In this document: piece by piece, positions 32,488 through 44,286 of the stretch
Layout: the number at the start of each line of letters is the position of its first letter
Position numbering within the stretch: position 1 is the stretch's first letter
Assembly (NCBI GenBank): GCA_020137815.1
Contig: CM035360.1
Location: 4,774,001-4,838,000 of the forward strand
Direction: 5' to 3'
Length of the DNA: 64,000 bases
Source of the DNA: Hormiphora californensis
Lineage: Eukaryota; Animalia; Ctenophora
Program-made: the position numbers and the translations under genes
The notes under the pieces: model-generated
Told to the model about the DNA's origin: nothing
The model's input: the letters and a program-made list of their open reading frames with translations, nothing else
The model's database searches: none

Positions 32488-34179
32488 GTGAGAGAGAAAG
32501 ACGAAAAAGGCCACCTGGATCGTGCATAAAAAAAATTGAAGTAAAAAGCTGAAAAGAGAGAACAGCAAATTCGTATTGTCAGATTATCGTTTTACTGCAT
32601 GCAGTGGGGGCCAAGAGAGAAATAGAATTGGCAAATTAAACATCCACCAGCTGGACAGCAGCCGCAGTGGTTTCAGCAATAAAGGGGTGATAACCAAGGT
32701 GATAATTTAAATTATATATAGACTTCCGAGTGATATCTTTATATCGACCAATAAAATTCCTTCAAAATCTTAATGAAAAGTCTTTGTCGAGCAGCTAAAA
32801 TCATCTAAAAGCTATTATGATAGTCAGCTAAAAGCTATTATAATAGTCAGAGCAGTAAATCTAGCGATAAGGTCCTGTCAGGGGATGGCGCCGAGAAGGA
32901 ACGCGAGACGGCGGAGAGAGAGGGTGAGAGAGAGAGAGAGAGAGAAAAACAAAGAGATAGATAGATAGTCATAGAGGGAGAGAGAGATAGAGAGAGATGT
33001 ATTTAAGAGATAGAAAAGCATCAGGGCCAGCTGAAAAAGATCGTTTATCCTGACAGGTGCGTTACTCCTCTCCAGTTATATGAACGGTAGCAGGTGCTCA
33101 GTCGTGTTTATAACCAATATTACACATATAAACTATTAACACATTAAACAGTTAACCCTTTACCCAGTGGGGGGAGATCGATTTGTCTCAGTAGATTATT
33201 TCTAATAATGTGGCTTCACAAAGTGAATACCTCCAGGAGATAGTTTTACGCGATTTAAAATTCCGCATATATGACATGTGTAAGAAAGTTGCGGTTCTAC
33301 GATGGCTGGTAATTTTCACGTAACGTCTATGGTATAATTATTGCAAGTTTCACCGTGACGTATTTGTACTGAGTTTCAGATTTATAATGTTTGCATAATT
33401 TATGAGAAAGTATTTTCGCGCTGCTGCGTGATGCATGATAATTGGTAGACATATGATAATGATACAAGGAAATTGGTAGACAATGATGTTCGATGTCTAC
33501 TAGACATGGAACGTGTCACATTATTGGTGGCTTTATATGTGTCATATTATTGGTTGCTTGGAACGTGTCACATTATTGGTGGCTTTATATGTGTCATATT
33601 ATTGGTTGCTTGGAACGTGTCATATTATTGGTGGCTTGATATGTGTCAAATCTCTTACCTGTGAAGGCTACTAGGTGCTGAGAGGTTAGTAAGGGCAGGA
33701 TACCGTATCAAATACCCATCCGTCTCGACACTACTCCTCCTAGACTTCACCCTTGTCACAGGAGGGCTGCTCCTAGGTGAGGGAGTGGCCCGGGGTGTCC
33801 CAGAGGGACTCACCCGGGGTGATGATCGGGTCACGTAGGGTATGGGGCTGGACCCACTTCGAGCAGGCCTCACAGCTGGAGCTGGCCGTATGATAATGGT
33901 AGTTGGAGTAGGTTTCAAGGTTGGAGATGAAGAGGATTTAGCAAATGTGCCAGGAGGAGTACCTCTCGGAGGTCCTGCACCAGTAGTTTTGCTGTTGGCT
34001 CCACTGGGTGCAGTACTACTACTGGAGGTCTTGTTGCTAGCTCCACTAGGTGTACTACTGGAGGTCTTGTTGCTAGCTCCACTAGGCAGCAAGGGCGCTG
34101 GAGGTGGGTTGAGCGCCTGGATATTAACGTAATACCCCGACTTGATGCCAGATATGGCCATGTTTTGTACAGACTTCAT
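25224..34179 (-). CDS. Pro/Ser/Thr-rich upstream exons (33659-34179, 31988-32028, 31035-31248, 25224-25280), possibly the long N-terminus of the TMCC-like gene
   Basis: MKSVQNMAISG...SPRVSPSGTPRATPSPRSSP...LHR|NQTYSFLLSIVFL|VIVVQQDKIP...DSLF|SDDEEPNVIAGDEFETISD. All phases chain into exon 16326, giving a 632-aa model. It could instead be a separate gene. Confidence 0.5.
28295..29321. repeat. Composite repeat: GC hairpins, (ACCATA)n, two ~440-bp tandem units with internal 20-bp repeats (Helentron/DINE-like organisation)
   Basis: ORFs 28480 and 28923 are near-identical at offset 443. Hairpin GGGGCC-TGGCAA-GGCCCC at ~28302, (ACCATA)n at 28426-28467, TAATTACATGTAATTAAAGGG repeats. Confidence 0.6.
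30641..30712 (-). tRNA. tRNA-Glu(CTC) copy 3
   Basis: TCCGACG TG GTGTAGGGGTTAGCAT C TGTGG-CT-CTC-AC-CCACA AGAC CCGGG-TTCGATT-CCCGG CGCCGGA A cloverleaf with A/B boxes and a downstream T4/T5 terminator. Confidence 0.93.
30786..30857 (-). tRNA. tRNA-Glu(CTC) copy 2
   Basis: Identical 72-nt sequence, 145-bp spacing, T-run terminator. Confidence 0.93.
30930..31001 (-). tRNA. tRNA-Glu(CTC) copy 1
   Basis: Identical 72-nt sequence, 144-bp spacing, T-run terminator. Confidence 0.93.
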
Positions 34180-34840
34180 GATCTGTGTTTGGGATAAGGT
34201 GGGTCGAGCAAGGAGATGGGTGTACGAATGTACAACGCGATGACAAGGTATTTTCAACAACAAGGAGGTTGTGTCACAAGGAAAAGAGACTGACACACCT
34301 CAAGAGAGAGAGGGCTGTGTTATCTCACTTGAAATACGAGAATCACATACCCCAACTTATATTTCAACACTAGCTTCAATTCACCAAATATATAAGGCCT
34401 GCTATATATCTCTCTCTCTCTCTCTCCATCTCTCTCTCCATCTCTCTCTCTACGCATCTCCTTAACTCCTCATCAGTCGTCTCCCTGTGTGCGTGACACA
34501 TGTGTACATGCTCTCATGGTACACACATGCTCTCTCCTAGTCTCCCAGACTCTCTCTCACGCCTCCTCATATATAGTTATTATAGCAGTCTCTCTCCAGG
34601 CAATTACCTGTCTGACAACTACTACTATAGGATCACACTTCACTTTAATGAGATTCAATTCATTTAATATAGCTCCATTTACACCTCCAAATTTTCAAAT
34701 TCATTATCACTTTTGAATTATGCAACAAAAACTAGGGTATAATGATAAACCAGCTGAACTCCATTACATATTGGCTGAATATATCGTGTGATTGAGACAG
34801 GGTAAAAGTATGGTAACCATGGCAACTCATTTGCATCATG

Positions 34841-37800
34841 CTAGAGAGATGCAGTGTCCATGGAGCCCAACATTTGACGAAGACCTTGGTTATTGCAGGT
34901 CAACAGGTACCCAATCATGGCACTATCTCCTTTCTTTATTGCGTCATCGAGGGGCGTCGTGCCCCATCTGTCCTCTGTTGCCACGTCAACCTAGGAGGAA
35001 ATGGAGCTGTTGCTATGGTAACAGAGGAAACGGAGCTGTTGCTATGGTAATTATATAGAGAGAATTGAGATGTTGCTATGGTAACCTAGAATGGTTGCTA
35101 TGGCATCTTCATAGTCATACCTTGCATTTCTCCACAAGAAACTTCACTACATTGAGATGACCTCCCACAATGGCAAAGTGAAGGGCCGTCCTACCATCAT
35201 AGTCTTTCCAGTTAAAGTTGATCTTCAACTCGTAATATCTGAACATGATAATGATAATGATACCATGTTATAGCTATAAGAAAGGAACACGACTGTGCGG
35301 GTGTACCATTATAGTGTTGTGTTGGCACACGGAGAATGTTATAGTTCATACCAAAACATGAAAGATCAGATTCAGTGTCTTATTCAATAGTTGCCATGTT
35401 CTAAACATACAACCGTGATGGAACTGGAAGTAATAAGTTGAGAACGAATTCCATTAATTAACTCAGTCACATATACAGTCCTACAGTCCTAAATAAACAC
35501 TATTTCATTGTATCAGAACTATGCGACTCAAAAACAGCCGATTGGTCAACTTATTGATTCAGTCACATATAATTAACCTGATTAGTAGAGGAAGATCTCC
35601 CTTCTTAGCTGCGATTAGTAAATTCACCACTTGCACCTATAGATATGATACAAATAAGTGGATACGTTAATAACAGGAGGTTGATTACTGCGGGTTAATT
35701 AAAACTTAACAGGAACTAATCGACTGACATTTTGAAAGTATAACAACAACAATTCAACTAATATTTATCCTGACACTGTTTATCTTGACTCACCTCTTTA
35801 GTCTCATGTGTCGAGTTCCTGATAGTAGGATCCTGCTTTGTATGGGGCATGTGAACTAGATTATCAAAGTTGTGGAATGCAAACTGCTCCACCAGTTTCC
35901 TGCTGAATGCCACACCCCGGACACTGTTCCCTGCCCTGTCCAGGAGGGGCGACCACACCACCACCCCCATCACATCCGGTATTACTATCATGATGCTGCC
36001 GGAGATGGAGGATCGAGCGGGGAGACCTACCTCAAAGGACCACTGACCTAGTGGGTGGGTATAACTATTAGGGAGATAATATGCTACCATGAAAGTGGAG
36101 AGCTGCCATGCCTTCCCTGTAATCATCGAGCATGTAAAATGACTGATGAATAAAGGGACAATCTGGGTAATATTAGTTATGAAAGCAGTTATAGGCGTTG
36201 GTCTGGCTACACTTAATGAATGATACGGGGTGTGCCGGAGATAAGGCTGGTAAGGGGTATCCTTTCCTTATAAAGGTGGACCCTGATTTATCGGGATGCT
36301 CGGGGAAAGGGATTTGGTAAATCGGAGCCCGACTGTATCATTACTAATGACTCTTACCGGAGCTACTGGCAACTCCACAAGAGTGGAGGAGAGATAGCGT
36401 ATTCCTCACTGCATCTGGTGTAAATATGGCCTCTGCCGTGAAGGGGCAGATTCCTCCATTAGCTAGTGTGGCGGCCATGGTAGCAGCAGAGTCAGTAGTA
36501 CACTGGATAGCGCAGAGCTGCAGGGGAAGAGGTAAGCGTGGTGACCGCTTAGCGGTTAATACTAGCAATAATGGAGGATTTATGGCCAAAATAATATCCA
36601 AATAATGTGAATAAGTGTCTGAATATCAATAAGTGTGTGAATAAGCGTGCTCTAGTATTTACCTGGAGGAAGAGGTCAATACCTCTCCTACCAGGGGCGG
36701 CCGTCGGCCGATCACTGGACCAATAGACCATCAGTACACTGACCAAAATAATGTGAATAAGTGTGCTATTATTTACCTGTAGAAAGAGGTCAATAGTTTG
36801 TTTCACGTTGGTGTTTGGCGGGAATACATCATGTTCCATCAGGTAGTAAGCTATGGCATGAATCTCATCCGCTGCCATCTTCTCGGAGAGGTAATTAGCA
36901 TTGGAGAAATCCACCCCCTCGAAAGCAGCTAGCCGCTGGATATTCTCCAGGAGGTAATCGAACCGGTCAGGGAGGGAGTACTTGGGTTTCAGGAGGGATA
37001 ACACAGTCAACCCCCCTGGTTCTATCATAGCATTGTGAGGTTTATCATCTCGATCCAGAACCAGCGTATTATCATCACCTCCCAGGGGTTCCTTCCCCAC
37101 ATACCCATGAACAGTCTCCTCTCCACACTCACTGATCGCCAGGGCATACACCAGGACATCACGGAGCGATTGGAGGGAGAAAATGTGGGTATGGTGTCCG
37201 AAACTGACCCGCTGCCCGTCCACCGTGCAGATGCTCACTGCCCACTTGTCACCGGGTACCCGGGCTAGCTGGTGAATGTGGTCAGATACAGCCCCGGTTG
37301 TGATTGATTTACACTCCTGGTACAGCTCTCTGATTGTGGTGGAGAAGGAGCCGAAATCAGGGATTATAAGCTGATCTGAGAGGGCTTGGTTGATCAAACT
37401 CGCACTGGGCCGGCATATCTGCTCAAACTCCTCTATCGGGAGAGATTTGAGAATGGGGATCTTATCCGTATCTGTGACGGACCTCTCCGCGGTCAGGGCA
37501 TCAAGGAGGACAGAGAATCTGGGGTCTTTAAACACATTGATGCCCGTCTTGTCCAGACTGGAGATGAACTTCCTAACATTCACCTTGTTACCGTCAACAA
37601 AACTGTCCAGGTGGGCTTTATCAATACCAGCGTGAGGGTAATCAATAGTCTTCTGGTCAAGCTGTTCTTGGTACCTCTTTAGGGGGCTTGTGTAGGAGTC
37701 CTTCCTCACATGGGGTGATCCCCCCTGGTCACTAGGCGGCACCTCTAGACAGTGGAACTCTACTGGTAGTGAGTGAACACTTCGCTCGTCGTCTGCGTCA

Positions 37801-38078
37801 GTATATTGATGATCCAGTAATCTGCCACTCCTGCTGGGAGAGTTGTCTTGAAGGAGCTGGCCAGCGCTGAAAACGGAGAAGTCGCTCCTGGACTCTGTAT
37901 CGTAGCCCTGGTCGGAATGGTGATCTAATAACATATCTGGAACATGAGGGTGGCTGTTGTTGTTGCTTCTACGTTCCAGTACATGAGTCACGAGGTTATT
38001 GTTGTTGCTTTCCAGTACCGGGTTGTTGTTCTGGTGGTCGCTTCCTAGTTTGTACTCCCATGAAGATGAGTTGATCAT
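34841..38078 (-). CDS. Glutaminase-like protein C with C-terminal ankyrin repeats, 6 exons, 680 aa; predicted catalytically impaired
   Basis: Exons 36777-38078, 36358-36517, 35794-36047, 35578-35636, 35121-35238, 34841-34990 join in phase with no stops. Motifs [28 protein letters not shown] and [20 protein letters not shown] are present, but the active-site motifs are altered ([20 protein letters not shown]). Confidence 0.88.
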
Positions 38079-38836
38079 TATTTGATCTGTTATCAAAATA
38101 TTAACTCCTAAAACTGCTGCAGGGACTGTGCTGCTCAGAGCAGAACGGAGGAGGGTGGTGGCTGGAACAAGAGCTGATCAATATATGAATTGGAAATGAA
38201 CTGGATATAAATCTCCCACCAGATAGGGGGATCTGACAACTATATTGAGATCAGATATACTGGAGCAGATGAGAAATTGGTTGGAGAGATTAGGGCGTTG
38301 ACTATGGTGAAGCGATAAGTTCTGGGTGATGAGAGAGAGCAGTTTTCTGTCTCAATATTCTCCTCGTATGCATGAGTGGCAAATTGATGCCCGGGTTTCC
38401 CATGGTATTCTATCACTACAGGTCGAGTTGGGAGAAAACAATTCAATCTATACTAGTAATCTGTCAAAAAGTGACGACATTGGGAGAATAAGAGCGAGAT
38501 TCATGGAAAGAGTGGTAAGTGACATATTGTTATCGATGTTATTCAAATATATTCAAAACAATTGATTAGTGGTATACTTGAAAAAGTTGACGGTTAGTAA
38601 TTTCAATATTACAACTGCAGACATTTAAAATCTACAGAATTATATCGGCTAATAATAATCGTTTGATTTGTTTACTATTACCTAGTTGACACCCTAGACT
38701 GTGTGCGAGTGTTCAAGATATATAGTCCAAGGGCCCCACAAACATTTAGTGTTCAATTTATGGTACACGACACCCGTCTCTTGATACTCCAATCATCTCC
38801 TTGTACTGACTACTGAAAGGTGCCTCACTTGGTCTC

Positions 38837-40573
38837 CTAGAACTGCATGGTGGCTTGTTCAATAAGGGTACACCCCCTCAACCCTCCCCTCTTCTCCAGA
38901 TACTCTCTCACATCAGCGAAATCATACCGAACAGCCTCGTCCAGGGGTGTGCTGTTCCACCTATCGAGAGGGTTAACATTTACCCTTCCCTTGGTCAACA
39001 GGAACTTCACCACATTTAAATGTCCGTTACACACGGCGAGATGTAGCGCAGTTCTGTTGTCATAGTCCGCCATATTGAAGTCCACCCCTATCTCAATATA
39101 CCGAGTTAGCAGCACCATATCGTTGTTACTGGCAGCACTCAGCATGTTGTTAATCTGCATCTCCCTCGTCTCCTGCCTGATCTGTAACCTGGGATCTATC
39201 TTCTTCACGGACCCTTGGACAGTATCGAACTGGTGGAATGAGAACTTCTCGATCAACTTCTTGGCGAACAAGATTCCTTTGTAGCTGTTCCCCAACTCAT
39301 CAAGGGGTGGTGACCAGGCACAGATGCCCATTACACCCGGAATGACAATGAAGATGGAGCCTGCTACCCCGGATTTCGCAGGGAGACCGACCTCGAAGGA
39401 CCATTCTCCGGAGTAGTCATACATTCCACAACTGTACATGAGGGAGAGGGTGTTCCTGACGGCATCAGCCGTTACGCAGACTTCCTTGGTCGTTGGGCAG
39501 ACGCCACCGTTTGCTAGTGTGGCACTAATCACTGCAGCGGAGTCTGCAGTGGCCTCAACAGAACACAGCTGGAAGTAGAGGTCCAGAGTTTCATGGAGGT
39601 TTGTGTTTTCTGGGAAGACGCCATGCTCTTTGAGGTAGTAACCGATGGCAAAGTTACGGTCTGCCTCTGACTTCTCAGACAGGAATGTTGCATTGCTAAA
39701 TCCAATGAACTCTCCTCCTGCCATCTTTTTGTATTCTTCTGTTGTGTAGTCAAACCTGTCTGCCAGACTCCACTCCTTCTTGATGACGCTACAACAGCTG
39801 ATCGCTCCAGGATTGATCATTGGATTGTGAGGGAGACCGTTCTTGTCCAGGCCAATCTGGTTGAAGCCAACTCCACTTGGCTCCTTTCCAAGGTGCCTAT
39901 GGACCAAGTCAGGTCCGTGCTCAGCAACATTGATGGCATAGTTTAGCGCCTTGCTGCAAGACTGGATGCAGAATGGTACATCCGTATCACCTATTGAGAA
40001 CTTTTGTCCATCAATCGTGCAAATAGAGATGCCCCAGTAATTTGGGTTCACTCTCGAGAGTTGGGGGATATAATCTGCGTTTTTGCCACCCTTCACCTCC
40101 TTCAGATCATCATATATCTGCTTGATTTCTTTGGCAAAGGCAGGGAAGTCTGGTATGACAAGGTTAGAACTCAGAGCCTGGTTGAGAATGAAAACACAAT
40201 CCTTTGCCGCAGATTTAAACTCCTCCTTGGTGACGTATTTCTTTACGCCAATCTCACTCTGAATGAAAAGTCCGTTCGGGTCAACTGAGAGTTTCAGCAT
40301 CATGCTCTCCAGTCTAATATCACTGAAAGGTTTGATCCCATTCCGTTTTAGTTGAGCCAGGACCTTGTGAACCATTATCTTTCCATCCTCATCCTGGAAC
40401 AGGCCCAGCAGGGACTCACTAATATCAGTAGTGTCATCCCCTGCATCTGAGTGCATGGAGAGTCCAGCGAGCCCATCTATAACCTGGGTCTCCAGAGATG
40501 GGCTTACTTTAAAATCTGGTGTGGATGTCTTTATATCACCATTTTGGACAGACGGACGGGTCTCTGTTTGCAT
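38837..40573 (-). CDS. GLS: Glutaminase A (KGA-type: EF-hand-like N-domain, catalytic domain, ankyrin repeats), intronless CDS, 578 aa
   Basis: ADYIPQL, FCIQSCSK (SxxK), HNPMIN, SE..ADRN, LYFQLCS, SCGMYDYSG, PAKSGVAG, DYDNRTALH, DRWNSTPLD are all present. Confidence 0.96.
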   Translation of the reverse strand: MQTETRPSVQNGDIKTSTPDFKVSPSLETQVIDGLAGLSMHSDAGDDTTDISESLLGLFQDEDGKIMVHKVLAQLKRNGIKPFSDIRLESMMLKLSVDPNGLFIQSEIGVKKYVTKEEFKSAAKDCVFILNQALSSNLVIPDFPAFAKEIKQIYDDLKEVKGGKNADYIPQLSRVNPNYWGISICTIDGQKFSIGDTDVPFCIQSCSKALNYAINVAEHGPDLVHRHLGKEPSGVGFNQIGLDKNGLPHNPMINPGAISCCSVIKKEWSLADRFDYTTEEYKKMAGGEFIGFSNATFLSEKSEADRNFAIGYYLKEHGVFPENTNLHETLDLYFQLCSVEATADSAAVISATLANGGVCPTTKEVCVTADAVRNTLSLMYSCGMYDYSGEWSFEVGLPAKSGVAGSIFIVIPGVMGICAWSPPLDELGNSYKGILFAKKLIEKFSFHQFDTVQGSVKKIDPRLQIRQETREMQINNMLSAASNNDMVLLTRYIEIGVDFNMADYDNRTALHLAVCNGHLNVVKFLLTKGRVNVNPLDRWNSTPLDEAVRYDFADVREYLEKRGGLRGCTLIEQATMQF

Positions 40574-41181
40574 TGGAACTATAATGGGGGTAGGGAAGGG
40601 GGTTAGTTATAAGGCACAGGTCTCTTTTTGGATTTTAACTAAGGGGTAGGGGATGGGGTTTAGTCATTACGGACGAGTCTGGGTTTAAGTTTGAACTAAA
40701 CGGCTTCTGAGGTCTAAATATTTCAAGAAATAAGAAACTAAACAAGTCACTAGTGGAAGGAACGAGAAATGTTAAGGTAGAGCTAAAATATTTTAGAACA
40801 AGGAGTTGAGAAATTCAGCTAAAAAGTAAGAAAAAGAAGAGAGATGTATAATGAGAAAGTTGGGTTGTCGATGAGTGATTTCAATATGGTTTGAGAAATG
40901 TTTATGAATGAATTCCCATTTTCGCACTACCATCTAGCCATAGAATTCAACTAAACGTAGCTTAAGAAGAATGTTGTCAGCTTAACCACGATTATACATA
41001 CTATCCCGCATGCACGACACAGGTCCAGATTCAAGCACAGATCTTTCCATGCACTTTCCATGCTACTGCAGATGATTTAAAAACTAAAAAAGTTTGTCAG
41101 AATTTATCACATCAAGTTTCTAAATTTGTAGTGTTCTAATCAAGTTTGAATTCATTATATTGCAAGAGTTGTTGTCTTCTC

Positions 41182-42939
41182 TCAATATTGGACGGCTGCT
41201 TCAATGACCAGCTCAGATCCACACTTCCCACCCCTCTTCTTCAGGTAACTAATCACCTCATTCTCCTGAGACTCCTTAGCATCATCCATGGGTGTAGCGT
41301 TCATCCTATCAATTGGGTTCACCTTCACCTTAGCCTTATCGATCAGGAACTTAACAACCTGTAAGTTACCAGCGGCCGAGGCGAGGTGGAGTGGGGTTCT
41401 CTGATCGTAGTCCGACATGTTGAAATCAATTCCTATCTCAAAGTACTTGGTGAGGAGAACCATATCGTTGTTGTTTGCGGCGGAAATGAGGTTCAGAATC
41501 TGGATCTCTTTACTCTCGAATCTCTGGTTTCGGCGGGGGTCTATCTTCTCGCTCTCTGACATGAAGATGTCAAAGGGGTGGAAAGAAAACTTATCGACCA
41601 GTTTCTTGGCAAACTCGATACCCTTGAAGCTGTTTCCTAGCACGTCCAGGGGCGGTGACCACACACAGATACCCATCACATCAGGGATGACCATGAAGAT
41701 GGATCCCGCCACCCCGGATTTCGCTGGGACACCCACCTCGAAGGACCATTCCCCGGAATAATCGTACATTCCGCAGGAAAACATGAGGGAGAGGGTGTTC
41801 CTGACTGCGTCTGGAGTGATACAGACTTCTTTGGTGGTTGGGCAGACGCCACCGTTTGCTAGTGTGGCACTGATCACTGCAGCGGAGTCTGCAGTGGCCT
41901 CAACAGAACACAGCTGGAAGTAGAGGTCCAGGGTTTCATGGAGGTTTGTGTTTTCTGGGAAGACGCCATGCTCTTTGAGGTAGTAACCGATGGCAAAGTT
42001 ACGGTCTGCCTCCGACTTCTCAGACAGGAAAGTGGCATTGCTAAATCCAATGAATTCTCCTCCTGCCATTTGTTTGTATTTCTCAATCGTGTGATCAAAC
42101 CTGTCCGCCAGACTCCAATCCTTCTTGATAACGCTGCAACAACTGATCGCTCCAGGATTGATCATGGGATTGTGAGGGAGACCGTTCTTGTCCAGGCCGA
42201 TCTGGTTGAAGCCAACTCCACTTGGCTCCTTTCCAAGGTGCCTATGGACCAAGTCCGGTCCGTGCTCAGCTACATTCATGGCGTAGTTGAGTGCTTTACT
42301 GCAAGACTGGATACAGAATGGGATCTTTGTATCACCAATAGAGAACCTCTGCCCATCCACCGTACACACAGAGATTCCCCAAAAATCTGGGTTAATCCTC
42401 GCTAACTGGGGTATGTAGTCAGCATTCTTTCCACCCTTCACATCTTTTAGATCTTCGTAAATTTGCTTGATCTCCTGGCAGAAACTGGTAAAGTCTGGAA
42501 TTACCATGTTGGCGGAGAGAGCAGAGTTGAGCACATCCGCACAGCAGGCTGAGGCCCTGATGAAATCACTCCTACTCATCTGCTTCTTCACCCCTATCTC
42601 GCTGGGGATGGTCAGTCCAGCTGGGTCAATGGACAAGTTATCCATCATCTCGATGAGTCGTGGGTCTTGGAAGGGCCGGATTCCATTCTTCTTCAACTGA
42701 GCTAGGATCTTGTGAACCAGGACCATATCATCATCTGTTGTATAAAGTGAGAGCAGGTTCTCATTGAAAGTACTGGTGGTCTTGGTGCTCTTTGTGGAGA
42801 AGTGATCTGGGGTGCTCGACCCGTTGAAGCTCCCATCTGTAATGGTCAGATCATCTCTCAGGGTAGTCTTCAGACTCTCAACCCCGCTATCGTCAGGATC
42901 GTTGATCTGGATCTTTGGGGTGGACGTTATCATGGCCAT
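41182..42939 (-). CDS. GLS: Glutaminase B (KGA-type with ankyrin repeats), intronless CDS, 585 aa from the first ATG
   Basis: Same complete motif set as copy A. The first ATG is at 42939, just downstream of a pyrimidine tract + CAG; the ORF-track start at 42996 is a TTG. Confidence 0.96.
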   Translation of the reverse strand: MAMITSTPKIQINDPDDSGVESLKTTLRDDLTITDGSFNGSSTPDHFSTKSTKTTSTFNENLLSLYTTDDDMVLVHKILAQLKKNGIRPFQDPRLIEMMDNLSIDPAGLTIPSEIGVKKQMSRSDFIRASACCADVLNSALSANMVIPDFTSFCQEIKQIYEDLKDVKGGKNADYIPQLARINPDFWGISVCTVDGQRFSIGDTKIPFCIQSCSKALNYAMNVAEHGPDLVHRHLGKEPSGVGFNQIGLDKNGLPHNPMINPGAISCCSVIKKDWSLADRFDHTIEKYKQMAGGEFIGFSNATFLSEKSEADRNFAIGYYLKEHGVFPENTNLHETLDLYFQLCSVEATADSAAVISATLANGGVCPTTKEVCITPDAVRNTLSLMFSCGMYDYSGEWSFEVGVPAKSGVAGSIFMVIPDVMGICVWSPPLDVLGNSFKGIEFAKKLVDKFSFHPFDIFMSESEKIDPRRNQRFESKEIQILNLISAANNNDMVLLTKYFEIGIDFNMSDYDQRTPLHLASAAGNLQVVKFLIDKAKVKVNPIDRMNATPMDDAKESQENEVISYLKKRGGKCGSELVIEAAVQY

Positions 42940-44286
42940 CAGCAGCTGGGAGAGGGTATTTATTGGTAATATATAGCCAGAAGCTCTTGGCAACAAGATC
43001 GGGTAATAACAAGCTGCTATATACTAGCGGAGACAGAAGCTTTGTGGAATGAGGCAAGGTAAGAAGAGGTATAGTACGCGGTTACTGGTGGCAGTTATGT
43101 AAATATTAGGCTACACACCATGGGGAGGGGTAAGAGAGACCAGGGAACATATTGTACAACTAGGATGTAGGTTAGGGAGCATGTTATAGACATTATGTAG
43201 GGAGCATGTTATAGACATTATGTATTGCATGGTATAGTAAGCAATTTAGAGGCCCACATTGTGACAGCTTGGTCTTCGGAATAATCTAATTCACCCTCGT
43301 GGGGTTATATAGAAAGGAGCAAAGTTGTGCAATCACCTCAGGATGAATAATCTATTCTTCCGAGGGGGAGAGAGAGCCAGGAAAGAGGTCCTTAATGATC
43401 GCCCTCAAAGGCCAAGCCGCTTTTCATTTTGACAAATAGATCAAGCTATATTTGACCGGTTAAGTTCACGGTATAATAATAACGGCGCGTGCTGCGGGTC
43501 AATTGACTCGTGCGTGTGTGGTAGTAGCAGCAGCAAAAACAAACTAAGAGATCACTAGATGGCGGCTGCAGGAAGGAGAAATAGCCGCATATTGTGCTGC
43601 GGAGAACAGGTCGGGTGGGGGTGTCGCGTGATGAAACAGTGTGACACGTCCTGCAAGGAGAGATGATACAGCTGATCCCACTCTCTCTCTCTCTATGTGG
43701 ACATGGTAGTTGAAGTGAGAAGGGGTAGCGGTAGTTGGAGGGTAATTCATCTCTCTCTCTCTCTGGATCAAAAGATAGGAAGGTGAAGCTCTTCATACCT
43801 CTCAAGAATAACTCCGTCTCCTTCACAACAAGAACTGGAACCAGTCTGCTGGATATGAAGTAGAGAGAGTAGAAGTAACATGCAGCGAGTTGATTCTGGA
43901 AATTCTCCGGAACTGAAACGTGTGTGTATGCACACCAAATTTAAGATGAAAGAAACCAAGGAATGCATGGAGATGATCCGGATATCACAGGTTACAACAA
44001 ATCTGTCAAACCACCGTCAATGCATCTGGTTACTCCTCCTCAACATCCGTTTCTTGTCTTGGTCTCAGGAGCAATTATAATGTGATCAAAATAGAAACAT
44101 CATGACATTGTGTAAAATGAAGATGATGGTAAATCAGGACTAAATTGAGCAAATCAGATGTAAACAGCTGAATAAATGTGTAGTGATGTGCACTGTGCAG
44201 GAGTGATGGTCTTGCGTGTGGTGGGTCTAAATCGGTCGACGGTCATGGTGGTAAGTCTTGTGTAAAGAGAGAAGGATAGGGAGAGA

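Follow-up and report, generated by a model that had tools for sequence, protein, structure and literature searches.

A conserved, probably inactive glutaminase paralog encoded beside two canonical glutaminase genes in the ctenophore Hormiphora californensis

We analyzed a glutaminase-family gene, here called gene C, in a 64,000-nucleotide stretch of the genome of the ctenophore Hormiphora californensis (GenBank assembly GCA_020137815.1, contig CM035360.1, positions 4,774,001 to 4,838,000 of the forward strand; this whole stretch is the window, and positions are counted from its first letter). The gene lies at 38078-34841 on the minus strand and probably encodes a catalytically inactive glutaminase paralog (i.e., a pseudoenzyme) that arose in a ctenophore radiation of the family, has been held under purifying selection, and would act through protein contacts. 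As judged from sequence comparison, its status as a conserved pseudoenzyme is well supported. The product is clearly homologous to an active enzyme family and lacks essential catalytic residues, and intact relatives with the same K289D replacement, long invariant blocks, and a neutral simulation indicate that selection has probably maintained it. An earlier note on this DNA had proposed such a dead glutaminase and had thought it relevant to glutamatergic signaling if the host were a ctenophore, which it is.

The residues of C were numbered after human GLS in two ways: by HMMER alignment to human GLS and to solved structures, for which the chain index plus 136 gives the human number, and by a 36-sequence alignment read through frog KGA, in which all of the anchor residues landed on their human numbers. 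Exon 1 matched human GLS with E = 3e-55, and in the HMMER alignment the human motifs ADYIPQL, QSCVK, PMVNAGA, and ESGDRNFA corresponded to SDHIHQL, QSLRD, AMIEPGG, and MAADEIHA in C. The changed positions were Y249H, C287L, V288R, K289D, S314L, R317D, F318D, K320T, N335E, R387E, N388I, Y414F, Y466A, D467S, K481R, G483S, and V484I, and S286, Q285, E381, D386, and Q416 were retained. Together, the alignments bore out the active-site substitutions that had been listed by hand in the earlier note, and the acidic activation loop that it described, PLGGDDNTL, is present at 37088-37062. The residues that contact glutamine in GLS include Y249, N335, E381, N388, and Y414; in C these are H, E, E, I, and F, so that E381 alone is kept. 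The catalytic QSxxK motif is replaced by QSLRD (37158-37172, minus strand), which keeps S286 and has aspartate in place of K289. S286, K289, and Y466 form the catalytic triad common to mammalian and bacterial glutaminases (PMC13218152), and proton transfer during catalysis depends on K289, Y414, and Y466 (PMC10770349). This triad is broken in C, where S286 persists, K289 is replaced by D, and Y466 by A. The activation-loop residue F318 stacks on Y466 and thereby switches the enzyme on, with the F318S variant being inactive, and phosphate is bound by way of K320, R387, Y394', and K398' (PMC13218152). At this anion site C has K320T, R387E, and K398H and keeps Y394, which is H in most of its relatives; the canonical ctenophore proteins A and B, described below, also are without K320 (Q in its place) and have H at 398. 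Of the three residues of the triad, C as aligned has therefore lost K289 and Y466; also gone are the F318 switch, two of the four anion-site residues (K320 and R387), and most of the glutamine contacts.

Some of these losses are shared with relatives in other ctenophores. A search with exon 1 yielded twelve proteins at 44-81% identity, as compared with no more than 42% for canonical glutaminases. The best match of gene C was a gene model of Pleurobrachia bachei (81%), with a protein of Mnemiopsis leidyi next, and the relatives found in Pleurobrachia, Mnemiopsis, and about eight other assemblies all possess K289D. When C was compared with ten of the twelve (n = 11), D289 was present in all eleven sequences, as was I or V at position 388; R288 was found in ten, and Y466 in none of those that cover the site. 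S286 and Q285 were invariant across this clade, and E381 was nearly so. By comparison, canonical glutaminases from bacteria to vertebrates, along with ctenophore A, B, and a further canonical locus of this genome (L006), read YSKNENYYKV at ten scored positions, with rare exceptions (P0143 and P0144). Other positions of the former pocket were variable within the C clade: 249 (H/N/S/Q/Y), 314 (L/A/I/K/T), 318 (D/H/N/Y), 335 (E/P/N), 387 (E/H/Q/N/S/K), 466 (A/R/K), and 467 (S/K/R). Y414F, K481R, and the acidic pocket occurred only on the Hormiphora/Pleurobrachia branch; Y414 was kept in most relatives, and the lobate-type relatives had P335, H318, H or Q387, R or K466, and K467 instead. A pocket that varies in this way resembles a disused site and fits with relaxation of the former substrate-binding region. 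The earlier note had suggested examining whether the substitutions are conserved in orthologs, and this turned out to be so for K289D, for N388I/V, and for the absence of Y466, whereas most of the other pocket positions vary.

A maximum-likelihood tree recovered the C clade with support of 99/99 and the canonical ctenophore clade with 100/100. All ctenophore glutaminases were grouped apart from the bilaterian and bacterial ones (98/99), and C therefore appears to be the product of a ctenophore-specific radiation. A, B, and the multi-exon L006 each had their own orthologs in this tree. The path lengths of C, A, and B were 0.74, 0.32, and 0.59, respectively, such that C has evolved about 2.3 times faster than A but not much faster than canonical B. 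When neutral substitutions were simulated on the coding sequence of C, the frame remained open in 2.2% of cases at 87% protein identity, in 0.7% at 81%, and in 0 of 300 at 52%; the first two values correspond to the distance to Pleurobrachia and the last to that of Mnemiopsis. The simulation included substitutions only, and the estimate is conservative because indels were ignored. Long invariant blocks run through the alignment of the C clade, and the ankyrin exons are highly conserved between C and the Mnemiopsis relative P0007.

The distribution of constraint along the protein also differs between the active and inactive types. Three other assemblies were set against this genome, with A- and C-type proteins matched by contigs of equal size. 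Across the three, the identity of the A-type proteins reached 85-88% in the catalytic domain but only 57-70% in the EF-hand-like domain. For C, the EF-hand-like domain was the more similar one in the two closer assemblies (79%, as against 64-65% for the catalytic domain), and in the most distant assembly the EF-hand-like and catalytic domains stood at 54% and 57%, respectively. By this measure of sequence identity, constraint in C has shifted away from the catalytic domain and toward the EF-hand-like domain.

The fold itself seems to have been kept. In an AlphaFold2 model of P0007, the confidently predicted core could be superposed on GAC and KGA structures with template-modeling (TM) scores of 0.91-0.95 and a root mean square deviation of about 2 Å (1.7-3 Å), which answers the structure prediction called for in the earlier note and suggests, for the C clade as modeled by P0007, that the glutaminase fold is retained. 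Residues 1-128 of the model are disordered, and the prediction is less confident in the activation loop and in the loops that contain positions 249 and 466.

Alignment of A to the region, combined with reading of the DNA, gave a model of gene C with six exons and five introns, all GT...AG, a coding total of 2043 nucleotides (680 residues), and a TAG stop at 34843-34841, in agreement with the intact frame and six exons of the earlier note. All of the exons are on the minus strand. Exon 1 (36777-38078; 1302 nucleotides, residues 1-434) carries the EF-hand-like domain between the disordered N-terminal region and the first ∼170 glutaminase positions, and it includes a stretch of 28 residues (not shown) together with AADEIHA. 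Exon 2 (36358-36517; 160 nucleotides) covers positions 173-222 of the glutaminase profile and ends in SCGVASSSG, with the Y466A and D467S changes, and exon 3 (35794-36047; 254 nucleotides) holds the end of the glutaminase domain with LPARSSISG (K481R, G483S, and V484I). The ankyrin region starts in exon 4 (35578-35636; 59 nucleotides) with a segment of 19 residues (not shown) that is near-identical in P0007, continues with a repeat in exon 5 (35121-35238; 118 nucleotides), and concludes with the last repeat and the stop codon in exon 6 (34841-34990; 150 nucleotides). The start, MINSSSWE, resembles MIKTSSWE of the close relative P0002, and P0007 also comprises 680 residues, with exons 1, 2, 3, 5, and 6 of gene C matched in order. 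The order of EF-hand-like, glutaminase, and ankyrin segments is the eukaryotic GLS architecture, and P0007 has all three domains. Exon-by-exon Pfam searches identified EF-hand_14 in exon 1 and the glutaminase family (PF04960) split over exons 1-3, where a whole-length match comprised profile positions 1-170, 173-222, and 227-286 (121, 45, and 78 bits, respectively, against a cut-off of 27); ankyrin exons 4-6 aligned with A and P0007. The retention of fold motifs and ankyrin repeats noticed earlier thus held, and so did the long N-terminal region, which had been put at ∼150 low-complexity residues: about 160 residues precede the EF-hand-like domain, but only about 100 of them are in excess of the corresponding region of A. 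Within this otherwise variable region, the clade alignment disclosed two conserved short motifs, D-x-G-Y-D-[ST]-x-S (37890-37913, minus strand) and [RG]-S-V-[HQR]-S-L-P (37764-37784, minus strand; RSVHSLP in C), the latter of which may resemble a phospho-serine or 14-3-3-type site, a likeness that is inference only.

Gene C is the last of three glutaminase genes that lie head to tail on the minus strand, in the order B (42996-41182), A (40573-38837), and C. A (38837-40573) is an intronless canonical glutaminase of 578 residues. B (41182-42996) likewise is intronless and canonical; its open reading frame (ORF) has 604 residues from a TTG, with the likely ATG at 42939 or 42933. Both neighbors have the canonical residue at all ten of the catalytic and substrate positions scored, as had been stated for the active-site residues in the earlier note. 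A similar proximity is very likely found elsewhere. In five assemblies of the European Nucleotide Archive (ENA), a C-clade protein and an A/B-type protein report a longest contig of exactly the same size: 86,987 (P0003 and P0136), 44,625 (P0123 and P0137), 71,261 (P0128 and P0139), 29,721 (P0011 and P0141), and 935,094 (P0006 and P0145). Because of these five exact coincidences, the dead and active genes are very likely neighbors in these assemblies too, within 30-45 kb in two of them. The linkage to two active paralogs that the earlier note had proposed is accordingly seen directly in this genome, as a B-A-C tandem, and is apparently conserved in the others.

C most likely acts without catalysis, because the triad, F318, anion-site, and glutamine-contact residues have been lost. 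Its contacts would be made by the EF-hand-like domain, the ankyrin repeats, and the disordered N terminus with its two conserved short motifs, and C might enter dimers or tetramers together with A and B, where, as a silent subunit, it would change their activity, assembly, or location. GLS functions as dimers, tetramers, and filaments (PMC13218152, PMC10770349). Mixed oligomers with A and B are the mechanism that we prefer, but only tentatively. They are plausible because GLS is oligomeric, the linkage is apparently conserved, and protists possess two-unit proteins that combine an active and a dead unit; they are not assured because the residues of the tetramer helix differ from those of A and B (F389H/Y, G392A, K396M, and Y394H in most relatives). 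Several other points join this difference in weighing against the proposal of a conserved pseudoenzyme that acts through contacts. The invariance or near-invariance of S286, Q285, and E381, with D289 fixed and R288 nearly so, could reflect residual or altered chemistry. The predicted structure is that of the Mnemiopsis relative P0007 and not of C itself, and the linkage in other species was deduced from identical contig sizes, not from inspected contigs. A search for RNA runs that cover the gene gave none, and one run bearing the same species label, available as assembled contigs only, had two pieces of 55-61 nucleotides on A and none on C, and is uninformative either way.

The same residues that resisted change could belong to a neofunctionalized hydrolase or transferase that acts on something other than glutamine by means of S286, together with D289/R288 and E381, and the fold and pocket scaffold are retained as such an enzyme would need. 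We regard this as quite improbable, given that two-thirds of a Ser-Lys-Tyr triad common to the bacterial and mammalian glutaminases of this fold (PMC13218152) is gone and that pocket positions 249, 318, 335, 387, 466, and 467 vary in charge and size, which argues against one conserved substrate. The earlier note had thought of a new substrate from the gain of acidic residues in the pocket; we discarded the idea of a clade-wide acidic pocket, since those residues are confined to the Hormiphora/Pleurobrachia branch, the lobate-type relatives are basic at 466/467, and the pocket chemistry is not conserved. A free-standing scaffold or ligand-binding protein, independent of A and B, is unlikely rather than improbable. 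Here the EF-hand-like domain, ankyrin repeats, and N-terminal motifs on a rigid dead core would bind other partners, or the remodeled pocket would sense a small molecule. This accords with the EF-hand-like domain being the best conserved part of C, with the high conservation of the ankyrin exons between this genome and Mnemiopsis, with the two N-terminal motifs, and with a tetramer helix altered relative to A and B; however, the variation of pocket residues among clade members makes a shared ligand unlikely, and the apparently conserved linkage to A/B together with the protist active/dead fusions points to a joint function. That C is instead a silent or decaying copy whose open frame is fortuitous we find hardly credible. 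Its evolution at about 2.3 times the rate of A, the odd duplicated splice donor in intron 1, and the lack of pieces of the single RNA run on C would be in keeping with such a copy, yet all of the splice sites and 680 codons are intact, a full-length relative of equal size exists in Mnemiopsis, invariant blocks persist in the clade, no simulated frame stayed open at the Mnemiopsis divergence, and the rate of C is close to that of canonical B. The intact gene structure and the simulation, in which a frame of this length very rarely stays open by drift alone, led us to reject a decaying pseudogene, as the earlier note had also done, and relatives with K289D are found across ctenophores in a clade of 99/99 support.

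The pseudoenzyme that we propose is best placed by comparison with known systems. Human GLS (KGA isoform) and GLS2 share with C the order of EF-hand-like domain, glutaminase domain of the beta-lactamase fold, and ankyrin repeats, at 39-41% identity; S286, E381, D386, and Q416 are common to them, and the predicted fold of P0007 superposes as given above. C differs from the human enzymes by K289D, Y466A (R or K in relatives), F318D, K320T, R387E, N388I, N335E, and Y249H, and by a long disordered N terminus that has its own motifs and, by eye, no obvious mitochondrial presequence. The canonical ctenophore proteins A, B, and L006 belong to the same radiation and have the same architecture as C, to which they are 46-47% identical, and A and B lie in the same gene cluster. 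These three keep every scored residue that is covered (N335 of L006 falls in a gap of a rough model), unlike C; A and B are intronless, in contrast to the five introns of C, and constraint is distributed in the opposite way, being strongest on the catalytic domain in A and on the EF-hand-like domain in C.

A profile search of 1.84 billion representative proteins revealed many two-unit glutaminases, 47 among the proteins retrieved (P0244-P0309 and others). Most of these combine a fully canonical unit with one whose catalytic residues are degenerate, and each unit is accompanied by ankyrin repeats of its own. Examples include ANDGO_01371 of Andalucia godoyi, annotated as "Putative glutaminase 3," and a Rhodelphis marinus transcript; some of the sequences are Trinity transcripts. 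Our literature searches found no description of active/dead two-unit glutaminases. These protist proteins pair a canonical and a dead unit as C is paired with A and B, but the units are fused in one chain and the dead-unit substitutions are different, whereas C is a separate gene beside active ones; the likeness need not reflect a common origin. The trypanosomatid AdoMetDC and DHS prozymes are paralogous pseudoenzyme regulators. Plant PDX1.2 is another such regulator (PMC6829848). In these cases, as probably with C, selection has preserved an inactive paralog of an oligomeric metabolic enzyme next to the active copies, but the analogy is functional only: the folds and pathways are unrelated to those of C, for which a complex and a regulatory effect are only proposed.

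The ctenophore expansion of this family has been described before. Moroz and Kohn (2016) counted eight "GLS enzymes" in Pleurobrachia and nine in Mnemiopsis, and the GLS expansion was taken to speak for an unusually elaborate glutamatergic system; their passages on the GLS count do not mention missing catalytic residues (PMC4685580). Full-text searches of the literature brought up no description of a pseudoenzyme in the GLS (PF04960) family. Databases already list gene C under the label of an unnamed or hypothetical protein, and what is new is its reading as a pseudoenzyme. Because C and about six other paralogs seem to lack the catalytic machinery, and C is conserved even so, the quoted number of functional glutamate-producing enzymes may be too high by a factor of about two. 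The remaining paralogs would then form an uncharacterized class of glutaminase-derived regulators or scaffolds, and a natural dead subunit of an enzyme that forms tetramers and filaments would offer glutaminase enzymology a ready-made probe of assembly-dependent regulation.

The other family members bear on that count. A homology scan of the genome (locus searches covered 110.7 Mb in 45 contigs) gave about twelve glutaminase-family loci, and a search with P0007 turned up no second C-type locus. Models of the other paralogs (L001-L009) were stitched from tblastn segments and are rough, with L004, L007, L008, and L009 provisional. On these models A, B, L006, and L002 are canonical. For about seven of the roughly twelve loci, the Ser-Lys dyad is not intact or was not recovered by the rough model: C, L001 (contig 1, 4.93 Mb), L004 (contig 5, 4.38 Mb), L005, L008, and L009 (contig 5, 5.89-5.97 Mb), and L007 (contig 1, 7.29 Mb). 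L001 has QSCMA, with S286 and K289A; L005 has QDLNR, and L005, L008, and L009 are of a type with S286D and K289R; and L007 has GSCVY. Relatives with similar changes exist elsewhere, namely P0317 (62%) for L001 and P0274 (68-70%) for L005/L009. A broader scenario, which we consider doubtful, is that most of the ctenophore glutaminase expansion consists of conserved pseudo-glutaminases in at least three separate dead lineages (the C, L001, and L005 types), and that C-type subunits, located beside A and B since before the cydippid/lobate split, form joint assemblies with them and control glutamate synthesis, whether as an activator of the prozyme kind, as a brake, or by capping filaments. In this scenario protists would have arrived at the same active/dead pairing independently, by gene fusion.

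Additional features of these loci were observed. L003 (contig 3, 6.93 Mb) has a canonical QSCTK motif and about six stop codons; it is a true decayed pseudogene, in contrast to gene C. L006 (contig 11, 5.99 Mb), which is closely related to A and B, has about ten exons, and its intron positions seem not to be shared with C. P0143 and P0144, A-type orthologs that are 70-75% identical to A, have K289M or else K289N with Q285Y and N388T, changes that could be further recent catalytic losses or sequence errors. The activation loop of the canonical ctenophore proteins reads GVGFNQIGL and is without K320. Judged by eye, A and B (38840-40573 and 41185-42996) have acidic or polar N termini without the look of a mitochondrial presequence, in contrast to vertebrate GLS, and the canonical ctenophore glutaminases A and B may perhaps not be mitochondrial.

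Among the relatives of C, the database entries end at intron 2 and hence look like ORF calls on genomic contigs. The odd C terminus of P0001 (Pleurobrachia bachei sb|3465933) was dismissed as biology, because the gene model slips out of frame where exons 1 and 2 join. The same model also skips part of the EF-hand-like domain, an annotation error, and its terminal residues are unrelated. Two scans of metagenome contigs, with P0007 and then with the alignment, returned no C-clade locus, only canonical glutaminases at up to 40% identity over long matches.

Intron 1 of gene C seems to be missing from the lobate-type relatives, whose ORFs continue through that junction. The donor region of exon 1 is tandemly duplicated (36628-36795, minus strand; copy 1 at 36747-36795 and copy 2 at 36628-36681), with the second copy of the donor and its flank (about 50 nucleotides) situated 114 nucleotides downstream, within intron 1. 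An alternative GT donor at 36662 would add 38 stop-free codons in frame, immediately after Q416. Directly downstream of C and in the same orientation is an open frame of 213 residues (33655-34296, minus strand) that is rich in Ser, Pro, and Thr and has repeated PSGASNKTSSS units. An AG precedes the ATG by 8, 5, 6, and 3 nucleotides in C, A, B, and the next downstream ORF, respectively (38079-38090, 40574-40585, 42940-42950, and 34180-34185, minus strand), and pyrimidine tracts are found ahead of the A and B starts. Spliced-leader trans-splicing has been reported to be common in H. californensis mRNAs (PMC8527503), and the AG-before-ATG pattern at these four starts would fit with that process.

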